Source: Guillardia theta CCMP2712 (taxonomy: Eukaryota > Protista > Cryptophyta). Taken from it: a stretch of 64,000 nt of DNA. The stretch covers positions 1,066,796 to 1,130,795 of the forward strand of contig NW_005434665.1 of NCBI RefSeq assembly GCF_000315625.1, written 5' to 3'. Each line of letters begins with the position of its first letter. Position 1 is the first letter of the stretch. The position numbers were made by a program, and so were the translations under genes. Shown piece after piece: positions 1 to 25,762 of the stretch. The notes beneath the pieces were generated by a model. That model made no database searches and was not told the DNA's origin. It saw only the letters and a program-made list of their open reading frames with translations.

Positions 1-625
1 ACTGATGTCGATGACGGCTTGACAAGCTGCATAAGAAGTAGTGTACGAGACATGCAAGCACCAATCTTGTTTGAACTCATCTTCCTGCCATTGAACGTCA
101 GCTAAAAGTATCATATTACTTTTGCACATGGCAAAGACATGTCAAAAAGTCCCTCTTGCATAATTCCTGGTGAAATTTGTGCACGATTACCCGCGACACA
201 TTTCGAATCTTCTACTTGTACATTTATGACAAGTAGACAAATGTATCCCATCACGTGTGATTCTACTTTCAGAAATTCGCTTTTCAGAACTGAAAATTCA
301 AAACTGGCTCTGGTTTGCTGCCGACTATCACTACTCATCTTTCTCACCTCTCTTATTCAGCTTCCCTTGTTGTTTCAACCTCTTGCTCTCCATTCCTCTA
401 TCGCTATCAGCCATCCTCCCTCTTCTTCTCTCCTCCTTCCCGCTCCCTTCCTCTCCTCCCCGTGCGGCATTGTCAGCCCCATTGCCATGAGCACATGCGG
501 CCGCTCCTCAAAATGTTTACTCAACAAAGATACCAAAAAGCCTACTATATAAGTAATCTTTTTCTAGTAGTTGTGAAACTACTCAACAAGATATAACTAA
601 AATCAGCACGGCATTGAGTCGCTCC

Positions 626-2061
626 ATGGTGTGGGTCGTGTGCCTGGCAATGGCGGGGATCGGGCTGCGACTGCAAGGAGGAGGAGGAGGAGGAGCAGTG
701 AGAGCAGCAGCAACATCAGCATTTGCTGCTGCCTCCTCAGTCTCCTCAGTCTCCTCAGTCTCCTCAGCCTCGTTGGCTGCTAGAGCATGGAAGAGAGGGT
801 TCTTGACGCGCGTCGTGGGCCCCTGTAGACTAAGAGGAGGAAGCTTTTTCCCTGATTGGATTCAGAGGAAGGAGAGGCTAGGAAAGTACAGCCCGTACGC
901 CGCCGAGAGACAACTGACTACCTTGGAGGAGCCTGAGGAGGTTGGAGCTTGTTGTTGAAAGCTATCATGACTTGGCAGTGGTCCAGGGTGGCAAAGTTGG
1001 CGCGTTGTTCGGTCTCTGCAACTTAGCGACTCAAAACATGGTGGAGGGAAAGTATGTGACAACGTCTTTCCTTGCCCAGTGTTGGAAGCTCTCTTTTGTT
1101 GAAACCTCGCGATTGCAGGTTGCAACTGTACGAAGGGGATTTCGAGCTCATATCCACCTGTCTGAATGACATCACGCCAGAGGAGTTTGGCTTTCCTCCG
1201 GTCTTCAGTTTCTACATGCTCGAATCTAGTCTGAAAGGTTTGGCAGAGCCGAGACGACGGGAAGCCGATCATCGACTACGTGGACATGTATCCCAGTCTC
1301 CTTTGTTGGATGTTATTCATGTCGACTTTTCCAGCTTTGAGGAGAAGAATTTCACCGCCTGCATGTTCAAGATTCCAGCAGGATCTCGCCTCCCGATGCA
1401 TGATCATCCTGGGGTTAGTCTTCTAGCGATGCTCCCAGCAGCTCATGAGAGGATGGTAGATGTACGTCTGGAGCAAAGTACTCTGGGGAGAGATGGAAGT
1501 TTCATCCTACGACCGGGAGACAGCGCAAGGTCGTAGAAAGGAAGAGAACAGAATCGAGGCGTTTGACATGTTTCTTTCAGCGACCCCGCGAGACAAGTCC
1601 TTCCCTTCATTACCCTCTCAAGCTCTGGACCTCCGTCCGTTCAAGGTTAGCGTTGACCTCGGTTTGTAGAAGCTCAGTGGGTTTCAGGTCAAGACCAAGA
1701 GAGATAGAGAGGTTTGGAGGAGTGAGGACGGCGTGAAGATCACGACACCCACGGAAGGGAACATACACGAATTCCGGTGACAAGAAGATCAACAGCTGGC
1801 AACGTGCTGACGTCATGGTGGGCAGGGCGGTCACGACCTGCTGCTTTGTAGACGGTGCCAGACACCTCACTGTGTCCTTGTTCTGATGTGCTTGCAGTCA
1901 TCATGCCTCCGTACGACTTCATGCAGGGACGGCGCTGCACCTACTACGAGATCAACGACAGGGAGGATGGGACATGGGCCCGGCCCATCCGTTGCCCCGC
2001 AGACTACGTCACGAGGAGCTTGAAGTACATAGGAGAGACGGTGGAAACGATTGAGGGTTGA
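626..2061 (+). CDS. Cysteamine dioxygenase / plant cysteine oxidase (PCO/ADO cupin family), multi-exon, with N-terminal hydrophobic leader
   Basis: Spliced motifs FTACMFKIPAGSRLPMHDHPG, VWSKVLWGEMEVSSYD, EGNIHEF (third His, ~1755-1777) and DVIMPPYDFMQGRRCTYY match the PCO/ADO signature. Exons are separated by short GT-AG introns. Confidence 0.88.
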
Positions 2062-2098
2062 GGGTTGTATGTGGTACTGAAAGGGATGTTCAAAGCAC

Positions 2099-4859
2099 TC
2101 AGCGCATCGCCTTCTCGAACTTCTTCCTCCACCACTGCATCTTCTGGTTGAGTTTCTGCCAAGGAGCATTCAGGGGAAGCAGGCAAGGGAAGCATTCAGG
2201 GGAAGCATTCAGGGGAAGCAGTGGACCTGAACTCTGGTGCCGTACTTAAGGTTCTCCCACTCTTCGTCCTCTCCCTGTGAGACTTTGACAAGCGCGAACG
2301 AGGGCGGAAAGTCGCTGACCTGAATGAGGGTGACTCGAGGGCGAGTCCCGCAGACCACCGGACTGTCCTCGATCTCATAGCTCTGGATATCGCAGATCAA
2401 GGAGAGTGGTGGGATGGGGAGGGGGGGGGGGGAAAGGGGGCAGAGAAAGATCAGCATTGAGCATGTGAAAGAAACAAGGAGATATCACCTTGACAGCTTC
2501 TGACGCTGCATGACTCGTGGAGTAGAAAATAACTGCCGAGTTGTTCTGACCATGGTAATCAACATTCTTGACTCTGCCGAAGCGCCCGAAGACTAAGGCG
2601 ATCTCCTGCTTGGTAGCGTTGGTGTGAAGATCGGTCAACCTAACATCCTTGAGTGACATGATGTGACGAGCCTTCAAATGACCTGATCCATGCTCCTTTG
2701 ATGTAGTTGGGCAAGTTCTTATGCTTCTTGTTCTGCTCTGCAACCATAGTCAGACCCGTCAAAAGAGCCTTTCTTCCTGCACCAAGAAGAGTCCTTTTCG
2801 CCTGCATCAAACATCACTAGGGTAGGACAGGAATGGGGTCATTACCACGAGGGCATTTCTCCTTTCAATCCTTTTCCAGTCTGCTTTCATGCACACTTGA
2901 AACTTCAGACAAAGAGCGAGACGGTCAGAAAACCGAAGGAGGCAGGGGAGGAATATGTTACATCTCCATCATCTTGCAGTTGAAGGGTTTCAACAACTTC
3001 CTGCAATATCATCGTCATCAGCAACGGTGATTGGATTGTGGGTGGTCAATCCACGGACAAGGATTTGGGAGACTCACTCTCGCAACGTTTTCATTCTCAA
3101 ATTCAACGAACACCGCGCCGGTTAGCTGTTTGCTCAAAGTCAGGATTGTTTGAAGAGCGAATGACAAATGCAGTTTCATGTCAGAGCAACAAGTCATAGA
3201 ACGACGCGAGAGGAGTCAAGTGTGGAGTTCAACCTGTTTGGTCCTGAAATGTCTGACAGCTCTAACACTTAGAACCTTCCCTACATTCTTGAAATGTCAG
3301 AGAACAAAGAGGATCGAACAGGTTGAGGTGAACCATATTCGTCGAATGCCTCCTGGGCATTCTCTATCTGTAGAACGAGTGAGAACAATGATGTTACCAC
3401 CAGTCAATCCTCTACCAGTTGCCCTACATCCGTAGACTTGAAGCCATCCACATAGATTGTTCTGCAGGTCAAATTCATCACAACATCCTTCCCTAGGATT
3501 CACCTCGTTCAGACCTGTTCGTCAATGCGTCCTGATCCAGCACTGGAGTTGTTCTTCTCACCCACTGGCCATCCGGGCTGACCTGGAGAGCTCAAGTCAA
3601 CAAGCCGAAACAACTTCATTGTTTCAGCACCTCCAGGTAGTCCACCCTCCGAGCTCCCTGGTGCACTTGAGGTGAGAAAAAGACTATTCACAACAGCGAG
3701 GACAAGATGACCTCAGCTATGTCGCGGACCGATGCACGCAGAGTTTTCATTCTGAGCCTCGAAAGTCAAGTTGAGGACGGTAGAGTGGCAACAAGTTTCA
3801 TCCCAAGGCCAAAGAGAAGATTGAAGATCACACATCTAAACGTGTACAAACAGGACCTTTGAAATGATGCAATTACACTCAAGTTCACGAATCCAGACTC
3901 GTTTCTGGATTTGCTGTGTTAAAACCAAGATAAAAACTTCTTCAAAGGAGATTGTTTTCGTCATCATGGATGTTTGAGACTTGAACGATTTAGCTAGGAC
4001 GCGTTAAAGTTTACCTTCCCATCTCGAACTGTAGGAATTTATCTCTTGGCAAATTGCTGTCTGAGAAATAGAACGCAATCTGCCGTGATACTGTCTGGCA
4101 TTTAGATATGAAGCAGCCGCAGCTAACAACTCACTCGCCGCTGGCCTGTCACGGTCGTGCGAGAAAACAATGGGCTTCCGTTCCGTCTCTATTCGCAAGA
4201 ACGTCAGAATTACAGCAGAGCAAAACATTCGCGAATCTCATAGCTGCGCGTGCAAAGAATCTGACGCACTTGAATTCTTTTTCTTAAACAAGAGATTGAA
4301 GGGGTTGAGTCTTGAAACAATCTGAACAATCAAGCGTGAATCGTGATCATTGAGAGCAAAGAATCTCACTTGGACGGGCGTCTGAATCAGCTCAAGTGCC
4401 CATTCTGTCCAACTCAACCCTGTCGCACACCAAGCTTGTCTAAGTTCATCACTCAGACTATATCAGACATCTAACGTTTCCGTTTTGACGGACTGTACAG
4501 ATTGTAAGCGTCAGTCACGTCTACCAAACAATCAAGAGCATCAAACCGCGAAGTTTCTTCATCTGCCTTGCCTTCAGATGCCTGCATCATACAATCACAT
4601 CACAGGACTATCAGGATCGCCAAGTTGTTCTGACCGCCTCGTCTGGGGGATTTTCCCTCGCCCTTTTTCCTGGTTCCAGCATCAGCCTTGTAGTTTCATG
4701 CCTAGGAAGGATACCAAGAGAGCTCTCGCCCCCTCGAAGAGCGAGATTTTGACATTTGAGCTGCACGATCCCTCCGCTCGGATGAACCAGGAGGGAACAC
4801 GGGAGGAGGAGGAGGAGGAGGATGGATGTTGAATGGAATACGACTTGCCTTTGACTCAT
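2099..4859 (-). CDS. La/LARP7-type RNA-binding protein (La motif + RRM1 + C-terminal RRM) with a probable signal-peptide leader
   Basis: Minus-strand exon ~4020-4110 reads RQIAFYFSDSNLPRDKFL (La motif). RTIYVDGF and TGAVFVEFENE form RRM1. VRLTDLHTNATKQEIALVFGRFGRVKNVDY is a second RRM, and the protein ends QWWRKKFEKAMR*. The link to the ATG at 4859 runs through several tiny exons and is inferred. Confidence 0.85.
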
Positions 4860-5555
4860 TGCTGACAGACAACTCGGTTCACCCCACGTGCTTTGGTGTT
4901 TTAAGAAGAGGGATAAACAGTGAAACAAGATAGATAGAAATGCGAAGAACCCACAGTAGAACCTAGAGAGCAACGATAAAAAAAGACGATGGGGGATTCA
5001 GGAAAGAAGGGATCAGGAGTCGGAGGAGTCGGAGGAGGAGGAGGAGGAGGAGGAGTCGGAGGAGGAGGATCAGTTGGGGGATCGGGGGAGGGAAGGGAGC
5101 GAGGAGATAGAGGACGGGGCTGCCAAGAGGCGGGGGGGTGGAGCGGGAAGGAGGAGGGGGCAAGACGCAAAGGGAAGATGAGGAACGTGGGAGGATACGG
5201 CCAATGGACTGATGAACACTGGTATAGGGGGTGGGGGTAGAAAATTTAACCTGATACACCCTTATATTTAGTGTAAAAAATGGGGTCAGGGGTAGTAGGA
5301 TTACACGGCAGTCAGGGTAGTGAAAGGAGCTCCTGGCATCCAACATGCTTGCAATCCATGGCGGCACTGCGACATTGTGGCAGGACAAGATACTCCAGCG
5401 ATGAGCATGCACATGTTGAGGACTTCTTCTTCAGCTTGAGATGCCTGTATGCCCGACAGCTTCTTGGGCTCAATGATGCAGGCATTGTGACTGTGAGGTT
5501 TTGTTGTAAAACATGTCCTCGATGACTATGAAGCTCTGTTGTACCTAGGGAATCG

Positions 5556-6047
5556 ATGGGAGGTACTAGGAAGGTGCTGTTGACAAGCACTCTCCTCGCT
5601 GTGCTACTGGCCTCGTGGTTGAGATCCTCGGACTGTGTCAAAGAACCTCCTTCATCCAAGGGAAACAGCCAGCCAATCGCAGAGAAGTCGAGTTCAGCCT
5701 CTCTGCACAACGTGAAGGCTGCCTTCCATGCACTGATGGCCAAGGAGAATAAAATCAGCAAGAGGAAGAAGGAAGACACCGGACGCAGCGAATGGCAGGA
5801 GGAGACGAAAGCAAGGTGGACAGCAGACGACTTTCCTAACAGGTTCGACGTTGTGCCGGGAAACTCGTGGGATGGCATCGACCGCTCTAACGGCTACGAG
5901 AGGTTTGCACAAGGAGCCATGGAGCAGAAAGTTATGTAGACCTGCAGGCGACTTCTGCGCAAGCAAGACAGGAGGCTCGAGCAGGAGATGCTCAAGGAGG
6001 TGCAGGAGCCTCAGCAGCTCTTCGAAGACAACGGTATTCATTGTTGA
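5556..6047 (+). CDS. BUD13: Small Bud13/Cwc26 (RES complex) C-terminal-domain protein with N-terminal signal peptide
   Basis: FPNRFDVVPGNSWDGIDRSNGYE matches the conserved Bud13 motif PNRFxIxPGxRWDGVDRSNGFE. One GT-AG intron at ~5903-5947. Leader KVLLTSTLLAVLLASW. Confidence 0.8.
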
Positions 6048-6132
6048 GGTCTTGTTTGCGCCCCTGACACTCGTCCAGTGCAAGAGTTTGATTCAGAGGA
6101 TTAGAACTCTCAAAGTCTGCTTGGAAGAGAGC

Positions 6133-7369
6133 CTAGACTACAGTCTTGCCTGCGTCCTCGTCTTCTTCTTCCTCCTTTACAGGTTCTTCCTCCTCCGGAG
6201 GAGGGGATATGGGATCTGTAACGCCCTTGGCTCGTTTCCGTACCTTGTGAAGCTGAGCAATAAAGCCCGTGTGTCCGATCTGAAAGACGTCACTTGTCAG
6301 ATCTACGAGACGAGAGGACGGTTGAGAAGGAGGGGAACGTGATGGTGGAGAGTTGGCGTGAGGAAAGTACAGAGGGAGGACAGAGGAGGAAGAATTAGGA
6401 GCCATGTCAAACAAGAACCTGTCGGAAGCTCGGGTGAGCGACTGGCAACTTCACATCCCATGTACGATGGGAGACTTCAAGGACGCGAGTGAGCGTAAGG
6501 GACAGGCCCGAGTTGCTGAGGGCGTCCATGAAGAAGGTGATCTGAGTGATGTTGGGGCAGAGGAGGATGAGACTTCCGCTGTACTTGAGCGCTTTCTCCG
6601 CGCGGGAGAGAGCCAACCATGGCTCCATCATGTCAAGAATGATCGCATCCGCACACTCATGCGGCAAGTCAGCGTCGCACAAGTCAAGGTGGTGGAGGAG
6701 AACATTGCCAGTGCGGAAGTCAGGGGTGAACCCAGCAAGATCCTTGCTGCTGTCGCCGCTCCCCTGCTCCTCCTCCATAGGAGAAGCTGAGTTCCTGGAC
6801 AGCCAGGTGGAGATGTTCCGAGCAGCGTTACGAAGAGAGTCCACCCGACGATCAAAGCTCCACACAACACCATCGGGTCCTACCGCCCGAGAGAGGAACA
6901 ACGAGAGCCCTCCGCTGCCTGTCCCCGACTCGATCACTCTCATGCCATTCTCAAGGTCCGCCAGCATGACGATGGCAGCTGCATCCTTGGGATAGATCGG
7001 CGTGGCTGACCTGGGCATGTTCAACACGTACTCCTCGAGGGTCAAGGGACATGCTAGCAGACTTTTGCCACGGTGCGTGTGAACCATTCCTCCAAATCCA
7101 GTGCGCATGACGTCGTGATGCTTCACTTTCCCCATGTGACTGTGGAATTCGCCATTCATTGTTACTCGAATTACGTACCTTTTCCTCGTGTCTGTCAGAA
7201 CAACGTGTGCTCCCTCCTGGATCAGCAAGGGTTCCTCCTTCTCCTGAGCCGGTTCTGCTCCTCCGTCTATACTGCTCGGCTGGCAGAGTCTAAAAGCCGA
7301 AGTCTGGGACCTGAGAAGAGGTCTCGTCCTCTGCAGCAGCCTGGACAATGAGCCGGATATGCTCATCAT
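6133..7369 (-). CDS. TRMT61B: tRNA (adenine-58-N1)-methyltransferase, TrmI/TRMT61B-like, probably mitochondrial
   Basis: Motifs LEEYVLNMPRSATPIYPKD, VIESGTGSGGLSLFL, DAIILDMMEPW and HPSFRQ|IGHTGF. Arg/Ser-rich N-terminus resembles a mitochondrial presequence. Confidence 0.9.
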
Positions 7370-7459
7370 TGTCGTGGCAAAGGACGAAAGCACGAGCGAG
7401 AGTACCAACAGAGAATGGGGCGAAGTTACAGGAGGATGCGGAGAGATCAAGATTGGGGC

Positions 7460-7600
7460 AGGGAGGGAGCAGGGATGGGAGCAGGGATGGGATCAGGGGA
7501 GGGATCAGGGGAGGGAGCAGGGGAGGGAGCAGGGGAGGGAGCAGGGGAGGGAGCAGGGGAGGGAGCAGGGGAGGCAGGGAGAAGGGAGGGAGCAGGGGCT
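7460..7600. repeat. Tandem 12-bp GA-rich minisatellite (GGGGAGGGAGCA)n
   Basis: Repeats directly visible upstream of the TRMT61B start. Confidence 0.9.
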
Positions 7601-7872
7601 GCATCCGCAAACCCGCCTCATCGAGACGTTCAAAGAAAACCAACACTGAGACGCGCCGCCGGCGGCCGGGCCCACGGCCCCGGCGTCCGGCCAGTATTAG
7701 GAGTCCACCGGGGCCCCGCCATGCGGCCGCGGGCTCCGGAGGAACTCCCCGGGAGTGGCAGGGCCCGGCCCAGGTCCCTACCCGGCGGCTCCGAGTCAGT
7801 TTCAGTCTTCATTTTCAAGTGCCATTCAAGGGAAGGGGCCGCACTGCGGCATGATTAAACTATTGATTTGAT

Positions 7873-10800
7873 TTACTGTTTGACCTCTATCATTGTAGAC
7901 GATGCAAGCAGAGATGACTGAGAGAGGCCGCACGTCTTGTGTATGCGATGGTACTGGCTGGTGCCGCAATTTACAGCGATCTGTTTCCCCTTGTTCTCCT
8001 TCCCTTGCGTGTACGCGCTCGGAATCCAGGAAGAGATCGGAGACACCGAGCTCTCCCCCATAGCCCAACCATCCATCTCGATGAATTTCAGCTCATGAGG
8101 GGCCTGCCAGGACATCAGGAGAAGAGAAGCGAGGGAGCGATTGATGGGGTAAGCAGACGCACCTCGAACATGCACCTAACAAGCTCCTCGTCCCCAGTGC
8201 GGAACAGATTCCATAGGTGATGTGCAATCCACCCGGGCATCCAGCAGGGGACGCGAACACTTCCTTGCTTCCACTCCAGGAACCGAATCTCCCCAACGTC
8301 CCCGCATAACATCTGTATGATTCGTTAGTGCCCACGGAAAGGTTCAGATTCTTCGACAACCTTCCCGAGAAACCCGCTGGACTCAAACGCTTTGTGCAAC
8401 GAAGAGTCTGCAAAGAAAGCAGCGAGCTGGGGGACATGTTCAACCAAGAACAAGCAGAGCAGGCGACGAACCTGAGAGGGGTAGAACATGGTGATGCAGG
8501 AATCTCGACGCGACGCGTTGCATACCACCACGTGCCCACAAGTGTCACGTGGCTTGTCGGGAGCCTCCTCCTGCATGTCTCGCTGAACCCATCCGATGCT
8601 GATCTCAGTACCACAGAGGGACCAGGTGACAGACTCTGGTTGGCAGATCTCGCTTAACGCGTTCTCGTCAATCCTCTGCTCCTCCTGATATCCATGGTTG
8701 AAGCCGACAACCACAACCTGCATCCCTCCCGGGTGTGAGCGTCCCGCTGCACTCGAACTCTCCTCCTGAGACGATTCCTCTTCCAGCATCATCTGCACGA
8801 ACCGTACATGCTGCTCTTCCAGAACGAGATCCGACACAAATGAACAGACTTGCAAAATCTCGTTGCGCAGTCTTGCCTCTATTTCAGCAGAGATAGGAGT
8901 CGCCAGCATGACTCGTATTCTTTCAGACGGCAACGGATAAGGAGCGGAAGGGACCGCAATCAATATTCTAGTGAGGAGCTGAAGAGCGGAAGCAGCGACC
9001 CCATCAACGGCCGACGCGCCTCTTGCTTCAAACCGTTTTGTCAGCAGTCGTTTCAGCCGGGTCAGCTTGTTCGAAATCACGTTCCTATCACAAGTTGCAA
9101 GGTCTCCATCAAAGACAAGGAGCACTTCCTTCTGTCCGCTCGCCACCTCCAGTCGTGCTCTCTTGTTCTCTTGGTGACAATGATCGCTCGCGGTGCTTGA
9201 CCCCTCAGCGTAAGCCATAGTCGAGTCTTCGCAGCTGTTCATCGCAATCAACTCTCTTTTCCCCGGACATGAATTCGTTGCCCTGTTTGAAGACTCTGCT
9301 TGTACAACATTCATGGCCTCATGAGGTTTGTTCTCTACGGACGGAGTTGGAGAAAAGTTCATGGGATTCATCAACCCGACATCCTTTTCGTCAAGTTCAT
9401 CGACGTAGTTGAGAACTTGCATCCACGCCTGTGTGTCGCTGTTGTCAATGCCGCTTTCATTTAGCTCGTCATGAGCGAAATCCTTTAGAAAGCGATTGAG
9501 TGAGTCGACGCGTCCCTCTGAAATAAAAAAGTCAAGAAAGGGCAACGCAGCAGGAACAATGGATGCAGTGAGTGCAGGCAGAATCTTACTCAATTCAGTA
9601 TTTTCATGCTGAAGAAGTACAAGCTTGTCGTGCCAGGCAGTATTGTTCCGTTCTTCAATATCTTGCATAGAAACAACTGATTCACCGGCACGGGACTCGG
9701 CAAAGCTACCTGTTCTTGCTTCGAAGGGCTGGATGTCCTGCAACGGAATTTCAGTGCAAATGCCAAACATAAGCACATTTGAGTTTTTTCACTTACAGCC
9801 AAGTTACTGTTACTGGGAGAAGCATTGCATGATGGCTCCTGGCTGCAGCTAGTTTGATCCAAGAAGGGATAGCCCGTGAAGCCATTGCTTGGAATTGGAA
9901 CTGAATTTGATGGAATCTGTTGATTTCCTTGTTTTTGAGGATACACTTGACCAGCTGGAACATCAGGCATGGCCTCAACAAATCGGTTTCGTGCCCCCTC
10001 TATCTTTGCCATTTCCAAATGCTTTGAATGTGCATGCGCTCGTAGACTATCTTCGAAACTGACCTGTGACATAACTCCGGCATATCCCTGCATCGGCACT
10101 GAGCCGGTTGCATTGAGGAACCCACTCGTGAAGTTCATATACTGTATTTGCTGGAGCCTCAGGCCTTCGGCATCGTTTCGCTGAAAAGGAACCAGAGATT
10201 TTTGCATGACATCATTCGAAACCTGACTTGAAAGGTGTTTCCCAGCATCCTGCCACATGGACCCCCGGTTGGCCGGCCACTCTGCATTGTAATATGGATC
10301 ATTGCTCTCCTGCAGCATAACAGGATGCTGCAGGTATTGCGCATTCATGCCGGTGCTTCGCCATGCACCCTCCATGTTTCCAGCTCGGAAATGCTGGCAA
10401 GGACGTCAGCAAGTGATGTTGAAAGACGTTGTCGGTTACCCCGTGCACTTGGTCAAGAGCGCTCATATGTGTCTGTGAGCCGCAGTGTTTCTTCCACTTC
10501 CTGCCAGCACGAGAATCATGACATACTCCATTCCCTGTTGTCATGTAGACTTCTAACCTCGGAGCAACCCAACATTTCGCTTTCGTACATCCCATAATAG
10601 CCTTTGCGCAGGACACTCCGCAACAAACAGAGCACCATTGGTAGTACTTTCTCGTCGGCTTGTTGTAGACGCCACCTTTCCCTATCTCCTGCTTCCCTTG
10701 CGTGTAAACCACCAGCGACGGCCCAGCCCATGGCACCGTCTTGGGAACACCGGCTTCGTGGTGTTCAGAGGCTGATGAGACAATCGGATTTCAATGACAT

Positions 10801-11264: not shown

Positions 11265-12577
11265 GCTCCTGAGCCCAACCAACCCGCTCACCCCTCCCCC
11301 CCCGCCTCACATTTAACCCCACCCTAGTACCCTCCAAGTCCTTCACTTTCAACCCCCTCCACCCTCCACCCCTCCATCATCAAACATTCTTACCCCACTA
11401 CCCCTACTTTCCTTTCAATTTTCCTTTCCATGTCGTCTTTCCTTTACACCCCACCCCTAAGTCTTATGTCTAAGGCTACCCCCTACCCCCTCCTTCACCA
11501 CACCTGCTGCGAATTCTCGCCCCAAACTTTTTAACCCCCTACCCCTCATGTTAATCACCCACCCCATTTTTGAGGTGTTTCAACCCGGTAGTATCTAGCA
11601 ATAATCTAAACCCCATGGGATCACACCACCCCTCAAGTCCCCTTCAGCTTGCAGCCCCCAATTTTCATCACCCTCGTTCACCATCGCATCATCACCCTCA
11701 TTCACAGCATTACTCCAGCTCATCGCCCTCATTCCCCTCTACGCCTTCTGCTGTCCTCTAGTCCCCCAGTGCGCTACATGCACACAGCTCCATGCTCGTG
11801 CTCGTTCTCCTCTCCTCCCTCCCTCCTCCCTCCCTCCTCCTCTCCTCCCCCTGAAGTATTTCTTCTGCTGCACACCAGCTTCCTCTAACGCGTTCCCCCA
11901 TCTCCTCTCCTCCATCATCTTTGTTCTGTGTATGGTCAGCTCAACTTCCAGATTCCTTCGAAAAGATTTGGATTTCCCTTCCCTTCCTTTCTTTCCACCC
12001 CCTCATCGTCCTTTTCCCTTGATCTCCTCTGAAGACTACGAATCTCATTGTGGCTACATCCCTGATTAGTCTTCCTATCACTTCTGTCTCGTTATCTCGT
12101 GGATTCTTGACGTTTCAACCCTCCACACATTTCATCGGGCCTCCAGCAGTATCTTATTGCTCTCCTTTGTTCTTCTTTTAGAAGCGTCTTTTCTTCCTTC
12201 CTCCTCTTTTGGTGGATGTTGAACGTGTTGCACACCGATGGTTTCTTGAAGAGCATGCTAATAGTAGTGTAAAAGAGATCAGTTGATTAGCTCGACAACC
12301 ATTTGGCCCATGCTCGCCCACGTCGAGTTAAGATTTCGTTTCCATGCTTCGTTCTCTTATATTCATTGAAATCTCAATCGTATGCATTTAGGATGGTTCT
12401 TGTCATCCTGTCCTGTTCATGGCTGATGTTGTTTTTGACATTCTCTCGATAGTCATTTATTGCAATCTAGTGCACAAGCCCACAGTGCCGATGATCTTTG
12501 TTGTTCGACCTGCTCGAGGACCATTACATGAGACTGATGATCGTTTTCTTCCAGTTATTTCAAGAAAGTTAGCGGCC

Positions 12578-20000: not shown

Positions 20001-23000
20001 GGCGGAGGACCTTGATGAGACGTTCTCCCCGAGGCAGCAGAGGAGGAGCGTCCCCTCCAAGCAGACGGTCCATCTCAACGTGTACGGGGTTGGGACGGTA
20101 GGAGCCGTGACGTTCGAGCCAGAGACGGTTGACTTCGGGACGCTGGTGGTGGGGACGCAGGTGTCGCGGGTGATCAAGTTGGTCAACCACTCGGACTGTA
20201 CCATGTACCACAATATCACCTCGAGCATGGAGAAGAACTTGGAGTACAAGGACGGCAAAGGCTTTATCTCTGCCTTCTCCACCAAGAGAGTCACTATCTG
20301 CTTCACCCCCAGTGAGAGGAAGTACTACAACGTCACCATCACCTGCCGGCTCTCCACCAGCTCCGAGTCGCTCGTCACTGGCGACCATGGGCCGAACCGA
20401 ACGGGAATACAGCTCCTCCAGGTCCCCTGACCCCCTGATCCTGCCCCTGTCTCTCCTCCTTCCCCTCCTCCTTCCCTCCACCTTCCTTCCAATGTCCTTC
20501 CTCCTTCCCCTTCTCCTCTGCTCCTTCCCCTGCCCCTGTCTGTCCTCCGTACTGCTGCCCACCCACCATCCCCAGTGCCTTCCCATGTCTTCTGACACTT
20601 GATGTCCACCAGGCGCTGGAGTTTGAGGATGCGCCTCAGTGTCAGGTGCTAGGCAACGCAGTGTATCCCGTCCTCTCGATCGTGGACGCGAGGGCGGCAG
20701 GGAGCGTGTTCAACCCGATCTCCTCCTCCCGGGTGTGGAGGGAGTTCAGCCTGATGAAGATGAACAAGGAGCTGTCGTCGGATCTCAACAGGAAGGAGGT
20801 CAAGTGGAACAAGGCTGAGATCGATGAGACCGATCCGACCAAAGTGTTGCAAGTGATGGAAATGAGGTTTGAGGTCAAAGAGCAGGGCTACCCCCCCAGC
20901 ATGAACATCCTCCGACTCAAGAACACTGGCGTGCTCGCCCTCGACTTCCTCCTCAAGTTCCCCAAGGATGATGAAGATGAGCCTGAGAACTGGGTGGACA
21001 AAGATCTACAGGTCTGCTCCTTTTCCACCCCCCCTCTCTCCCCACCCCCTTCTTTCTCCCTCCTTCCCTCCTTCCCACCTCCCCACCTCCCCCTTTTCTC
21101 CCCCAACTCCACCCCCCTTGATCTTGATCTCCCCCACATTTCCTTTCTGTACTCCGGCCACATCCTCTGTCAGTCTTTCCTTCTGTCCTCCTCTTCCTCC
21201 CTCTCTTCTCCCTCCCCTCCTCCTTCCTCAACACAACATCGCATTGAAGTGATCGCTACAGGGCGAGGAGGAGCTGACTCTCAACATGATCCTTGAGAAC
21301 AAGCTCTTCCTCTGCGAGCCTCGCAGGGGACACTTGGAGGTGGGAGAGGAAGTAGATCTCATCCTCTCCTACAAGCACCTCATGGCCACTAAGGAGTTCC
21401 GCCTCCCAGTCGTGCTCAACATCTGCGAGCTGCCTGCAGCAGGAGGCGTTCTCAACACAGGAAAGCAGATCGTTCTCTCCCTCATTGGTCAGACTCTGGC
21501 CATCGCCGAAGCTTACCTGCACCTCCCTGCTCCCGATGCTCAGCACTACAAGCACCTCGAGTGGGGCTTCGAGAAGACCCCCATAGGGCTGATTTCTCCT
21601 CCCATCCAGTACTACAAGCTCGAGAACCTTGGACAGGTGAGGTTGGGGGTTGAGAGAAGGAGAGCTGAATGGGGTCAGGAGGGAGTTGAGGGAGGGTTGT
21701 AAGTAGAAGGGAGGGGAGTAGGTGGAGAAGTTGAGGAGAAGGCAAAGACCGAGGTGGAACAGTGCAGGCAGGCACGAGGGGGAGGAGGAGGAGGAGGAGG
21801 AGGAGGAGGAGGAGGAGGAGGAGGAGGAGGAGGAGGAGGAGTGGTGGTGGTGGTTGCTGAGAGGAAGGGTTGAAGGTACCGCTGGACTATCACGTGGACA
21901 TGAGCGAGGTGGAGAAACTGAACGCGGAGAACTTTGGCTTCGACGTGGTCACTTGTCTCGACAACACCGACTGGCACCTCGAACCCGGCGAGAGCGTCAC
22001 CATGCGTTGGGTCTTCAACCCCCTTGAGGCGAAGGTAAAGGAGTAAGGAGGAGGAGGAGGAGGAGGAAGGGGTGGGGGGGGGGTGGAGGGTAACTGAGCA
22101 GAGGAGGATGGTGGAAGAGGAGGATGTTTCAAGAAGGAGGATGAGGAGGAGTGAGATTGAAGAGAGCGAGTTTCAAGGACATTTTGGTGTTTAGGAGGAG
22201 GCAAAGAGTAGCGTGTTGACTTGTTCCTGCAGATGTACACGTGGCAGCTTCCTATCTCAGTTTACAGCGGGGAGAGTGGGGGGGAAACGCACGTCGTCAA
22301 GTTTTACGCTGAGGGATGCCAGCCCAGCGTGCACAGCAACCCTGAGACAACCGTATGGCAGATGCCGTCGTCTCAGGTCCCCTGCTCCCCTCCCCTCCCC
22401 TTTCCTCTTTTCTCCTCTCCACTCGTCTTGCTCATCTGCTGTCCTTGCTGCTCCTGTTCTCCTCTCCTCTCCTCCCCTCTCTCATCTGCTCCACAGATCA
22501 TGCCGACGCCCAACCAGCTGGTCTTGATGACGGCGGAGAGATTCTGCATGGGCAACATCCCGCTCGGCGCGACGATCCACCGGATGATCATCCTGACCAA
22601 CTTCAGTCACGAGCAGGTCATGATATTCAACTTCGACCTGGACGGGGAGCTTGCGAAGCAGATGGTAGTCCTGCATCCCCAGAGCGGCGAGATTGACCCG
22701 CTCTCGCACGTTGTTGTCAAGATGACCGTGCGCTGTATGACCTCCAGCATCCTTGACTTCGATGTGCCTTGCATGGTGAGCATGATACTGTAGACGCAAT
22801 TGTTCCTCCTCCTCTTCCTGCTCCTACTCCTCCACCACCTTGTCCTCCTGTCCTTCCCCACCACCACCACCACCACCACCTCGTCCTCCTCGCCTCCGTG
22901 TTGCTCGTCACTTCCTCGCACTGATTTGCTACCCGGTGCAGGTGGCACCGAAGCAAGAGCCTGAGGAGGAGAACGAGGACCTAGCAGACGACAACGAAGA

Positions 23001-24669
23001 CGCTGCACCGCCTCCTACTAGCGGGACTGGCCGGCCATCGACAGGCATCGCGCAGTCAGTATCAGGAGGGTCAGTCGCTGGGACAGCGAAGAGCGCGAGG
23101 AGGAGGAAGAGAACGTCAGTGATAGAGCTTCCTCCTCCCATGCGCAGCTCCGTGAGGCAGAGACACGGGGGCACGCGGGGCTTCGTGAGCTTCCAGGAGA
23201 GGAATGACGGGAAAGACAGCGGCAACCGAACGCAGGTAGGGAGGACGAGGGATCAGGAAGGGGAGGATGGGAGAGGAGGAGAGAAGGATGGGGAAGGGAG
23301 AGGGGAAGGGAAGGACGGGGGAGGGGGACGGGGAGGGAGGAGGCGACCTTTCCCCTTGTAACTGTGCTCGCTTGCAAGCAGTCCTTCATGGACGACGCGG
23401 CGAGCGTGAAGAGCGGGTCGAGCAGAATCAGCGCGGCTACCGCCCAAACCTCCGTGTCCATGGCGAGCGCTCTCTCCTCAGTGAGCAGGCAGACGGGGAT
23501 CGGGTCGCACATGGATCAGGTGAGACGATCGGGTGAGTTGCTGAGCGGCTGACGAGAGGAGCAGGAGGACGACGACGAGAGCTCCGAGCAGTATCTCTTC
23601 CTCTCCCTTCAAGCTCACGTCCGACCCCCAGAGCAACATCGTTCCCTGCATGAAAACAACCACGTGAGTGTGCTTTGCTCTGCCCCCCCCCCCCTCCCCT
23701 TCCCCTTCCCCTGTCTCCGATCTCACTCCTGTGCAGTTCTTCTGGTTCCCCAAGTCTAGTTTCTCCTCCCCGGACGGTATCTCCCCCAACCTGCGTCTCC
23801 CCACCACCGCCTCTAGTGCGACCAGCGACCGCCGCAGCCCCTCGCTTGCTAGCGGCAACGATCAGAGTCCTGCTAGCACAGCCACGGGCACCCGAGGAAA
23901 CAGCGCTGCTGGCTCGCGCCCCTCCACCAGGGACGCCAGCCAGGTGAGAGGAGGAGTGTGGAGGAGCACTTGAACTGACAGGGCAACAGCAAGCGCAGCT
24001 GCGCGCCAAGGTCACGGAGGGGATTCTGGAGCAGTTGCTCAACGACATCATCAACGACGACCAGGTGCCTGAGGTCTGTGCTCTAGAGCCCCTGCTGACC
24101 TCCGAGCAGATCCTCAACTCCTTCACCCAGCTGGAGGAGGCGCCGGTCCCGTGCTTTGTGCAGGTAAGAAACCAGTGGGAGAGTCTGGAGCGCTGAAGGG
24201 AAAGCGGCAGGTTGCCAAGAGGCCTCCTGCGATCTTCCAGTGCGAGGAAGCGTCGAGGTGAGACCTCCTCGTCAAGCTCTTGTAGCTGACTGCAGATGGA
24301 AGCAGAGGGGAGGCAGAGGCGGTCGCGGATGCCGCTGAGGTTCGTTCATCTCTGCCTGTGCTCGTTCGTGACATGCTGTCTGGCTCAGAAGGCTCACGAG
24401 GGAAGGAAGCGACGGGTTTACGCGGGCATCGACGTCCCCGGGCATAGCGCAGAGGTAATAGCGTGCTAATTTCAGAGGAATAGTGCTGACCTACTTGCTC
24501 CCAGGTACCGTTGGAGTTGACGGAGGAAGAAGAGGAGGAGCTACAGAGGGACACAAGGAGGAGGACGGCCATGAGCATGCCGGAGTTTGAGAACCTGGCA
24601 GCCTTTGTGCTGAACGCGTGTATCTTTAACTTTTTGGAGGAGCTGACCTATGGAGAGGAACAATTATGA
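17037..24669 (+). CDS. CFAP65: Cilia- and flagella-associated protein 65 (CCDC108)-like, multiple ASH/MSP Ig-like domains
   Basis: N-terminal YGIDCPSELHW...KLTIKNVSTQVIKFKYKLPETSFF, repeated 'VDFG...LxN' ASH domains, RNFRLVTDENFVPP, and a long multi-exon structure. Confidence 0.85.
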
Positions 24670-24683
24670 AGTACAAGGTCTCT

Positions 24684-25762
24684 TCACTTCACGTGCAGCT
24701 GCTGCTGGGTGTCGTTAAGGTCGGGGTCGAAGACGAAGTACGGTTTCTTCCCCCGGAACCTGATGAACAAGTCAGAGCTCCCATGCTGATCGCCAACAGA
24801 CTCACTCTGCCCTCAGTCGCTCAAACTCTTGCATGTCGAACTTAAGCACATGCCGACGTGGCTCTTGATTCTCAGACGCCGCGCTGTGTTGATCGACCTT
24901 CTTTGCAATGATGTGACCTTGCGCCGGATCCTTTTCGAGGGCTAGAATGTTTTGATTCACCAGGGCTGAGCAGTCGAAGAGATTTTCAATTGTCTCCCCG
25001 AATGAGTCAGGGTTGAAGAAAAGTTCAGCAAATCTCATTGTGAAATCCCGACTCCACGACTCAATCTTGCTCCTGATTTGTCGCTGTCTCTTTTCACTGT
25101 TTCGTTTGTCGCTGTTTGCATCTGAGCCTGTCAAAGGAGTGGTCTCCTCCACCTTCACAAGACGTCAACAATCGTCGGACGAAGGGTCCCAGTCTCTTAC
25201 CTGTCGCCTCTTCTGCCTCACAGCTTGCTTTCTCACTTTGGGTTGGATGTCCTTGCCAAGCGGGTGTGACATGAAGTGAATGCTAGGTGTATAGTCGCAG
25301 AAGGCAGCAGCATGTCGGTCCATCTTGCTCCAGTCGATGTCCACGTCATCTTCTTGCGAGGGATTCAAAGAGCGAACGCTGTACATCTCCACTGTGTTGA
25401 TTACAAACTGCTTGGTGCTAAAACGACCTCCCTCCGTGTCCGCATTCTTCGCGCGATCAACTCCACACTTGATCATACGATTGAAGCATTCTGCTTCTTT
25501 CGACATCGCCACCGGATGTTGCACATCCGCAAGCTGCGCATTGCTCCTCTCTACAAAGTTGAGGAGGATTCTCCCTCCCTGTTCTTCTCTCGCATTCGTG
25601 ATCACATGGCTGTTTGCTTTGAGGAGAGCGTTAGAATCTTACACCGGAATGTCAGGATGGAGGAGATTTACCTTTGATCTCCTCATCAAGTTCATCGTAT
25701 TTGCGAAGCTGTTCTCGTACTGCATTCCTTGTCCTTAAGGCGCTGCGATGGCCGTCGCTCAT
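24684..25762 (-). CDS. NSE4: SMC5/6 complex kleisin subunit Nse4/EID family
   Basis: FAELFFNPDSFGETIENLFDCSALV is the Nse4 C-terminal motif. DIDWSKM and FMSHPL are also present. Confidence 0.85.

Follow-up and report, generated by a model that had tools for sequence, protein, structure and literature searches.

Three adjacent genes in a 64,000-nt window of scaffold JH992973.1 of the cryptophyte Guillardia theta CCMP2712 (the whole stretch of DNA analysed, in whose coordinates all positions are given) encode a thiol dioxygenase (ADO/PCO), the RNA chaperone La, and a minimal form of the splicing factor Bud13, each with a hydrophobic N-terminus. The known ADO/PCO members of plants and animals are cytosolic or nuclear. 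Our best explanation, which we consider rather probable as a whole with the route of the leaders included, is that ADO, La, and Bud13 are ordinary nuclear genes of G. theta, each transcribed separately. The most likely destination of their products, and a plausible one from the leader sequences, would be the relic endosymbiont compartment, that is, the periplastidial compartment (PPC) or the nucleomorph.

Gene structures and transcripts

Gene structures were rebuilt from the RNA contigs of several runs, X2 and X3 among them, together with translation (Table 1). The contigs show that all three nuclear genes are expressed, and the corrected products are 332 aa (ADO), 436 aa (La), and 152 aa (Bud13) long. 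The hydrophobic N-termini that a first-pass annotation had pointed out are present where it had placed them, in real reading frames.

Table 1. Positions of the genes, exons, leaders, and intergenic stretch in the window.
Feature	Position	Strand	Evidence or remark
PCO/ADO thiol dioxygenase CDS	626..2061	+	RNA junctions, contig ends, translation; PF07847
ADO exons	626-940, 987-1051, 1119-1200, 1247-1287, 1335-1413, 1460-1529, 1581-1645, 1688-1776, 1826-1854, 1898-2061	+	RNA-supported
ADO leader, residues 1-72	626..841	+	hydropathy and motif reading
Genuine-La-type gene (La motif + RRM1 + RRM2/RRM_3), CDS 436 aa	2099..4859	-	exon sums against RNA contig offsets, bin depths
La exons 1-12	4859-4715, 4669-4635, 4581-4530, 4419-4370, 4321-4270, 4188-4135, 4090-4015, 3904-3857, 3751-3712, 3657-3631, 3582-3515, 3461-3416	-	
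La exons 13-23	3367-3334, 3280-3234, 3125-3078, 3000-2962, 2902-2846, 2801-2783, 2737-2683, 2639-2489, 2382-2320, 2274-2227, 2155-2099	-	
La exon 1 (leader)	4715..4859	-	hydropathy, translation; Baffinella equivalent
La alternatively retained 81-nt intron	4189..4269	-	bin 4180-4378 depth = 151 nt (X2) vs 70 nt (X3)
Uncovered divergent intergenic stretch, La/Bud13	5097..5284	.	La contig to 5096, Bud13 contigs from 5285, 5357, 5384; depth nil between
Minimal Bud13 gene, 152 aa	5556..6104	+	annotated GUITHDRAFT_150768; exons reproduce protein exactly
Bud13 exons	5556-5902, 5948-6033, 6079-6104	+	
Bud13 leader, residues 1-27	5556-5636	+	hydrophobic core VLLTSTLLAVLLASWL

The spliced ADO ORF, which opens at ATG 626 and closes with the stop codon at 2059-2061 (the public model has 276 aa), is interrupted by nine GT-AG introns of 42-67 nt found in three RNA runs. 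Its RNA contig (run X2, record 8) extends to position 610, and the region 560-625 contains no ATG, so that ATG 626 is the first in the transcript. PF07847 is present in the annotated product; taken singly, exons reach 24.9 and 20.9 bits against this profile, under the cut-off of 27. The metal-binding histidines were read from the spliced translation as MHDH (HDH) and IHEF.

The La gene was rebuilt with 23 exons and 22 introns, all GT-AG and 43-110 nt in length, and differs from the public model. Adding up the exons gives exactly the offsets recorded for the contigs, namely 848 nt from 4714 to 2637 in X3 and, in X2, 606 nt and 159 nt, and the model agrees with every depth bin. The 5′ end of the transcript lies at 5096 or beyond, no ATG occurs in 5096-4860, and ATG 4859, the first of the transcript, opens the 436-aa ORF. 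Run X3 has the greatest depth (220), and in it the 81-nt intron is spliced and the leader ORF is continuous into the La body. The same intron is retained in the X2 contig, where the leader ORF ends after 120 codons; ATG 4228 lies inside it, in frame with the La body. Comparison of the 5′ ends with RNA data, which the first-pass annotation had called for, places the leaders of both ADO and La within the transcripts, with translation from the first ATG.

The La motif (PF05383) reaches 38.7 bits in the exon at 4088-4017 (cut-off 37.1) and 69.4 bits in the Baffinella orthologue. The RRM1 region contains the RNP-like stretches TIYVDGF and GAVFVEFE and can be aligned with Baffinella; Pfam RRM_1 did not report it at E<0.01. 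For RRM_3 (PF08777, cut-off 22.9), the orthologue scores 28.4 bits and the window exon alone 17.1, which is under the cut-off. By language-model features and predicted structure, the nearest atlas clusters are genuine La, 'lupus La protein' among them, with the domains La + RRM_1 + RRM_3; the LARP7 cluster scores lower. Identity to Baffinella P0014 is 38%.

Bud13 RNA contigs are unbroken from 5285 to 5900, and in-frame stops lie upstream of ATG 5556 at 5523 and 5529. The contigs include an upstream stretch of 170-270 nt holding 12 ATGs, which leaves the true 5′ end and the translation efficiency uncertain. The PF09736 domain scores 48.3 bits (cut-off 27) over profile positions 92-143 of 144 only. 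La and Bud13 stand head-to-head with 697 bp from ATG to ATG, in agreement with the roughly 700 bp noted before, and the 5′ ends of their transcripts are at most ∼190 bp apart in the RNA contigs. The uncovered stretch between them is probably a promoter region common to both genes.

The N-terminal leaders

The hydrophobic cores of the three leaders span 13-16 residues, with Kyte-Doolittle 13-mer means of 2.4-3.0 by a hydropathy heuristic. This is signal-peptide length, not transmembrane length. Signal peptides were judged by hydropathy alone, and cleavage sites, hence the +1 residues, were guessed by the -3/-1 rule.

The putative ADO signal peptide has an n-region without charge and a hydrophobic core at residues 2-14 (629-667). 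Between LRLQGG at 665-682 and a final CRLRGG at 824-841 lies a long Ser/Ala/Arg-rich stretch with no acidic residue; the 40 residues past the core contain 0 Asp/Glu and 23 Ser/Thr/Ala and are clearly transit-peptide-like. The guessed cleavage leaves Gly or Leu at +1 (Leu if cut after GIG). The La leader is signal-peptide-like over residues 1-30, with a core (residues 13-25) coded by a CTC-repeat tract, Ile at the guessed +1, and a short transit-like stretch of ∼14 residues. Its LALRGG occupies residues 39-44 (4745-4728); exon 1 stops 4 residues past the GG, and the region past RGG is acidic, unlike a transit peptide. In Bud13, Val is at the guessed +1, the region past the core is moderately transit-peptide-like, and the leader contains no RGG motif.

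Two of the leaders are found in other genera. Baffinella frigidus keeps the La architecture, with a putative signal peptide, C-x-LRIRGG, and G-x-KRA-x-E, and the Hanusia phi Bud13 orthologue, at 50% overall identity, keeps a hydrophobic N-terminus with an LL-VLLA core. In addition, the Bud13 coding region including the leader diverges by ∼4-5% from a metagenomic relative, compared with ∼10% upstream.

A recurrent LRGG ending

The leaders of ADO and La both end in C-x-LRGG, which is ubiquitin-tail-like. In a published set, [LIMV]RGG closes the presequences of 8/17 signal-peptide-bearing G. theta PPC proteins, namely sCdc48, EF-1alpha, 14-3-3, RRM1, CyP, Ubc8, ugg-t, and PPC ubiquitin; RRM1 is GFP-localised (published set, Appendix S2). 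Several Thalassiosira PPC proteins have the ending too. Among the first 23 cryptophyte 'plastid' entries, no presequence with Phe/Tyr(+1) has [LIMV]RGG except XP_005822237.1. The FBPase paralogues divide likewise, the non-aromatic XP_005839318.1 with LRLRGG and the Phe(+1) paralogue without. These endings provide one new line of support for the PPC reading of ADO and La, and an LRGG ending of PPC presequences has apparently not been described in the literature that could be searched.

The G. theta PPC ubiquitin precursor gt_155024 consists of a signal peptide, a ubiquitin-like domain ending CLRVRGG, and then ubiquitin. Considering ADO, La, Baffinella La, the eight G. theta proteins, and the several diatom proteins, we tentatively propose, while leaning somewhat against it, that [LIMV]RGG may be a functional ubiquitin-tail mimic cut by a PPC deubiquitinase-type protease. 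After SELMA-mediated entry, such a protease would cut behind Gly-Gly to give the mature protein, the same cut that the PPC ubiquitin precursor must undergo (…CLRVRGG/MQVF…). The removal of the transit-like peptide of periplastid residents has been left open ('TPLs are somehow then removed', PMC5756292). If the proposal is true, it would identify the 'TPL peptidase' step and a sequence code parting PPC residents from stromal proteins. A functional LRGG ending would also make transit-like-peptide removal directly testable and should improve PPC proteome prediction.

Destination of the proteins

Cryptophyte nucleus-encoded periplastid and nucleomorph proteins with a bipartite targeting sequence were reportedly described by Gould and colleagues in 2006. 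The field requires a signal peptide of any protein destined for the nucleomorph (PMC6411479); when a protein of nuclear or cytosolic type bears one, this is accepted as the criterion of periplastid/nucleomorph import (PMC6411479, PMC4494062), and stromal and PPC sorting are told apart by an aromatic(+1) rule (PMC4494062). Passages of a re-evaluation of the nucleomorph-encoded proteome name several splicing factors and, within those passages, neither La nor Bud13 (PMC6559170). The import suggested by the first-pass annotation has gained from the translation of the leaders, from the retention of the La and Bud13 leaders in other genera, and from the LRGG ending of ADO and La; the destination itself we infer.

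The primary products would carry an ER-type signal peptide and then a short transit-peptide-like stretch. By the route usual in cryptophytes, they would pass co-translationally into the ER, the lumen of which connects with the outermost plastid membrane, lose the signal peptide, and cross the second membrane via the ubiquitin-dependent SELMA machinery. Retention in the PPC would follow because the transit-like part would start without an aromatic residue. From the PPC, La, whose extension has the basic patches KRAR and KKKNSKTERK, and Bud13 would enter the nucleomorph. There, La would act as a chaperone of Pol III transcripts and Bud13, as a RES-complex remnant cut to its conserved C-terminal core, would serve the splicing of a handful of nucleomorph introns. 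For ADO, the expected role is that of a thiol dioxygenase within the PPC; this compartment has a ubiquitin system of its own, and the enzyme may supply an N-degron pathway there.

Other destinations of the leaders are unlikely, be it the plastid stroma for ADO or, for each of the three, the ER, the secretory path, or a membrane. The ADO leader is long, Ser/Ala/Arg-rich, and acid-free like a true transit peptide, contains TSAF, and could be cleaved in front of Leu, a +1 residue that can permit stromal import in diatoms; however, its CRLRGG is a PPC-type ending nearly absent from Phe(+1) stromal presequences. The missing RGG signature of Bud13 is uninformative since about half of the published PPC set is also without it. 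Furthermore, neither La nor Bud13, both nuclear proteins that handle RNA, has a plausible role outside the cell or in the ER lumen, and the cores are too short for membrane anchors. Should the three families lack leaderless host copies, the proteins may have a dual use or another role.

Gene order

The first-pass annotation had also proposed a local cluster of host-supplied factors. We give little credence to a selected, co-regulated cluster serving the cytosol and nucleus of the endosymbiont, despite the closely spaced divergent transcripts of La and Bud13 and despite upstream neighbours that look organelle-directed as well. These are an Era GTPase ORF, whose leader is of plastid type (TSVA/F), and an ORF outside the annotation that opens like a signal peptide and contains LRLRGG, so that the leader-bearing run may be five. 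The nuclear gene total given by Curtis and colleagues in 2012 is said to be roughly 21,000-25,000. The number of G. theta nuclear genes estimated as PPC-targeted is ∼2,400 (Curtis et al. 2012, cited by PMC4494062). At these gene counts, roughly 20-30 runs of three and ∼1 run of five leader-bearing genes would be expected by chance, and by this estimate the run seen here is no more than chance would give. At least three further signal-peptide ORFs occur elsewhere in the window, head-to-head pairs are commonplace in so compact a genome, and the Baffinella La locus has neither Bud13 nor ADO within 10 kb on either side. The adjacency of ADO, La, and Bud13 is most likely coincidental, save for the short divergent promoter region that La and Bud13 probably share.

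Barely credible is the view that the leaders are untranslated (as artefacts of the gene models, as upstream ORFs, or as CTC/CCT repeats that happen to read out as hydrophobic), for although the CTC tract of La, the X2 isoform from which ATG 4228 could start a leaderless La, the ATG-rich region upstream of Bud13, and the deviating public ADO and La models speak for it, the first ATGs of the ADO and La transcripts, the uninterrupted X3 ORF, the conserved La and Bud13 leader architecture, and the low divergence of the Bud13 coding region speak against it.

Relation to known systems

With PPC/nucleomorph import as the preferred reading, the three corrected gene models would be added to the factors that the host encodes to maintain the cryptophyte nucleomorph; the LRGG ending that recurs in periplastid presequences of cryptophytes and diatoms came to light through the leaders of ADO and La.

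Like PCO/ADO thiol dioxygenases (PF07847), ADO has the family match and a cupin core with H-D-H and a third His, but it differs by an N-terminal extension of ∼105 residues that opens like a signal peptide and includes a transit-like region. La shares with genuine La (SSB/Lhp1: La motif + RRM1 + RRM2) the La domain, TIYVDGF/GAVFVEFE, and a C-terminal RRM_3-type domain, and departs from it in an N-terminal extension of ∼127 residues that contains a putative signal peptide, LALRGG, and basic patches. Bud13 retains the conserved C-terminal core (…NRFDVVPGNSWDGIDRSNGYE…) and the PF09736 match of Bud13 of the RES (retention and splicing) complex, whereas its 152 aa are unlike a typical Bud13 in that the leader replaces the long basic N-terminal region.

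The C-x-[LV]RGG tail that ends the ADO and La leaders recalls the PPC ubiquitin system (sUb precursor, ptDUP deubiquitinase) and SELMA. Unlike the PPC ubiquitin precursor, ADO and La bear the tail alone, without the ubiquitin fold, and processing past the GG is putative in all of them. Bud13 differs from known cryptophyte PPC proteins in lacking the RGG ending, and all three are candidates from sequence alone. With known PPC/nucleomorph proteins they would share a putative signal peptide and a short transit-like stretch on cytosolic/nuclear-type proteins, and ADO and La share the xLRGG ending of sCdc48, EF-1alpha, 14-3-3, RRM1, CyP, Ubc8, and ugg-t; ADO, La, and Bud13 would be new, better-modelled members of this known class.

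Gene models and leaders

A word search with the first exon of Bud13, a splicing-factor gene, identified the 152-aa Guillardia theta CCMP2712 protein GUITHDRAFT_150768 at 100%, and also returned a metagenome relative at 92% and a Hanusia phi orthologue at 60%; the cryptophyte origin assumed in the first-pass annotation is thereby borne out. The gene sits on scaffold JH992973.1, and the corresponding locus record, L001, is the window shifted by 4445 bases. For the PCO/ADO thiol dioxygenase gene (ADO) and the genuine-La-type gene (La), the RNA-supported proteins of 332 aa and 436 aa replace public models of 276 aa and 462 aa, respectively. Both genes contain many exons of 19–57 nt, and most of their introns are 42–55 nt long. 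The 5' ends and strands were inferred from RNA contigs; the raw-read run X18 gave 27 reads only. An Rfam scan of positions 1–8000 produced no credible match.

Features of the locus (window positions unless L001 is stated)
Feature	Position	Strand	Length or detail
Unannotated ORF	L001:1766-2482, upstream of window	-	238 codons
Era-type GTPase ORF	L001:3521-4525, ~0.3-1.3 kb upstream of window start	-	334 aa
ADO, public model	626-2061	+	276 aa
ADO leader element 3, CRLRGG	824-841	+	residues 67-72
La, public model	2099-4859	-	462 aa
LALRGG of La	4745-4728	-	
Bud13, public model	5556-6104	+	152 aa
GCD14/TRM61-like (TRMT61B-like) ORF	6407-7369	-	320 aa
GCD14/TRM61-like gene, public model	same locus		250 aa

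Contigs of three RNA-type runs, aligned to positions 200–6150, define nine GT-AG introns of 42–67 nt in ADO. Once joined, the exons read through in one uninterrupted frame between ATG 626 and a stop codon at 2059–2061; one contig extends to position 610, and no ATG occurs upstream of the start in 560–625. The family-homologous part of the protein begins at about residue 105. Ahead of it lie a 13-residue hydrophobic core (residues 2–14), a stretch with no acidic residues and 23 Ser/Thr/Ala among 40 residues, and the motif CRLRGG. A stop-free ADO segment of 158 aa, used as a word-search query, retrieved no orthologue or paralogue.

The La gene was rebuilt from the listed junctions, the contig record offsets, and the depth per 199-nt bin, which was treated as a flat contig depth multiplied by the covered fraction. 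Enumeration of splice chains by dynamic programming gave 91,191 solutions, which were resolved by the depth bins and by a Baffinella frigidus orthologue (P0014, found by a profile-free search with the RRM2 exon) that fixed the La-motif and RRM exons. The resulting gene has 23 exons and 22 GT-AG introns of 43–110 nt. Its exon sums equal the contig offsets exactly, with 848 nt from 4714 to 2637 (record 11 of RNA run X3) and 606 nt from 4135 to 2637 (record 8 of run X2), and are likewise exact for the 159 nt upstream of 4321 (X2). The first ATG of the transcript, at 4859 (none is present in 5096–4860), opens the 436-aa ORF, and exon 1 encodes the leader, in which the core ILLLLLLPCSLLV is followed by LALRGG at residues 39–44. 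We considered that the leader might be an upstream ORF, given that every frame of exon 4321–4135 contains stops. We rejected this reading when the bin depths revealed two extra exons (4669–4635 and 4581–4530) and an 81-nt alternative intron; once these are included, the exon sums agree exactly and the ORF is uninterrupted. The 81-nt intron (4189–4269, minus strand) is spliced in X3 and retained in X2; when retained, it stops the leader ORF after 120 codons. It also contains ATG 4228, in frame with the La body, from which a leaderless isoform is conceivable, one that would sit behind a long upstream ORF.

The La domain of the protein exceeds the Pfam cut-off and its nearest atlas clusters are genuine La. 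The Baffinella orthologue (474 aa, 38% identical) combines La, RRM_1, and RRM_3. A clear signal peptide opens this protein; behind it come C-M-LRIRGG, then G-M-KRA-L-E, and then an S-W-rich segment. At the same positions, the G. theta protein has C-QN-LALRGG, G-KRA-R-E, and L-S-W-T-E-W. The two N-terminal extensions align with a BLAST E-value of 0.75, a likeness too weak for BLAST, and thus the architecture is conserved and residue-by-residue homology is not proven.

The exons of Bud13 (5556–5902, 5948–6033, and 6079–6104) match the public protein exactly, and in-frame stops are located at 5523 and 5529. In Hanusia phi, the orthologous protein likewise starts with Met, a charged stretch, and an LL-VLLA core. 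Divergence from a genomic relative that is 93% identical amounts to ~4–5% in the coding region, including the leader, and to ~10% in the 144 nt upstream. RNA contigs begin at 5285–5384, which places 12 ATGs (5285–5555, plus strand) inside the apparent 5' UTR; the ORFs of all 12 terminate before 5556, and several of the ATGs are not kept in the 93% relative. The Pfam match is restricted to the last third of the profile, and by this match the gene product is classed as a minimal Bud13. A scan of metagenomes for further Bud13 relatives found none.

An RGG ending of PPC presequences

The leaders themselves provided an independent line of evidence on destination. Because the ADO and La leaders end in C-x-LRGG, we inspected published sequences of the periplastid compartment (PPC), which houses the nucleomorph (ASAFind 2.0 Appendix S3, PMC12136025), for an RGG ending. 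The motif [LIMV]RGG closes the presequence in 8 of the 17 G. theta entries for which a signal peptide is predicted (sCdc48, ugg-t, EF-1alpha, 14-3-3, RRM1, CyP, Ubc8, and the PPC ubiquitin precursor), where our own composition-based estimate of the chance expectation is ~0.1 in 17 x 100 residues. The presequence of Baffinella La ends in the same way. In Thalassiosira, Der1-1, sSec14, and TrxH end in [LI]RGG, sCdc48 and sCdc48-2 carry RGG after Ala or Gly, and sDTC has LRLGG. In the cryptophyte plastid set, of which the first 23 entries were inspected, all but one of the presequences whose first transit-like residue (+1) is Phe or Tyr lack the motif. FBPase shows the split between paralogues: LRLRGG is present in the copy whose +1 residue is not aromatic, and the Phe(+1) copy has no such motif. 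A six-frame count across the window shows no enrichment of LRGG (10 observed versus 6.2 in shuffles), and the match at 11467 is non-coding G-rich sequence; the signal is the position at leader ends, not raw counts.

The G. theta PPC ubiquitin precursor, gt_155024, consists of a signal peptide, a transit-like part, a divergent ubiquitin-like domain, and ubiquitin. Its ubiquitin-like domain ends in CLRVRGG immediately before ubiquitin. This precursor suggests itself as a model of how PPC proteins could be cut behind Gly-Gly.

Predicted destination of the three proteins

All nucleus-encoded proteins of the cryptophyte nucleomorph or PPC need a signal peptide (PMC6411479). The first residue of the transit-like part sets the address, with an aromatic residue or Leu leading to the stroma and other residues to the PPC (PMC4494062). 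The -3/-1 rule suggests that this residue is Ile in La, Val in Bud13, and Gly or Leu in ADO. For ADO, the RGG ending, together with its near-absence from Phe(+1) stromal presequences, makes the PPC a likelier address than the stroma. The RGG ending also supports a PPC destination of La. It is missing from Bud13 and, equally, from half of the PPC reference set. In the passages searched of the re-evaluated nucleomorph proteome, several splicing factors are present and La and Bud13 are unmentioned (PMC6559170), which is consistent with import.

Gene arrangement and neighbors

The first-pass annotation had proposed that the three adjacent leader-bearing genes form a candidate import cluster, and this is probably not the case. 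G. theta has ~21,000–25,000 genes in total. The number of nucleus-encoded PPC proteins has been put at an estimated ~2,400 (Curtis et al. 2012, cited in PMC4494062). From these figures, 20–30 runs of three adjacent PPC genes would occur per genome by chance, and even a run of five leader-bearing genes is expected about once. In Baffinella, neither annotation nor tblastn located Bud13 or ADO in the 10 kb flanking La on each side. Elsewhere in the window, a crude scan picked up additional signal-peptide ORFs (24578, 37956, and 38873).

The compact arrangement itself is real. ADO and La are convergent with stop codons 37 nt apart, and single RNA contigs span both genes, which means that the two 3' ends form an antisense overlap (2062–2155). 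The head-to-head orientation of La and Bud13, also proposed in the first reading, was borne out, with at most ~190 bp between the divergent transcript ends.

Both upstream neighbors look organelle-directed, judging from their predicted N-termini. The Era-type GTPase ORF has a plastid-type bipartite leader, …LLLMQLVKPSSTSVA/FIQP… (TSVA/F), and its public model (307 aa) lacks this N-terminus. The unannotated ORF, for which there was no Pfam match, has a signal-peptide-like stretch, RRIRLTRGSGLPVILLFLFVNASC, with VVFLRLRGG ~45 residues on and then acidic residues. On the other side, the TRM61-like ORF opens with a segment that is rich in Arg, free of acidic residues, and similar to a mitochondrial presequence. 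It extends further N-terminally than the public model, and an exact-product look-up gave no match. Immediately upstream (7450–7370), a hydrophobic stretch in the same frame has no ATG.

Comparison with known PPC proteins

In our literature search, no paper linked Guillardia to LRGG or to Bud13, or RLRGG to periplastid or SELMA terms; within the searchable literature, the RGG ending appears to be undescribed. PPC residents lose their transit-like peptides to a peptidase that a 2017 review leaves unnamed, saying that the peptides "are somehow then removed" (PMC5756292). Host-encoded PPC and nucleomorph proteins carrying bipartite leaders form a class that is well established, and ADO, La, and Bud13 are new or re-modelled members of it by predicted destination.
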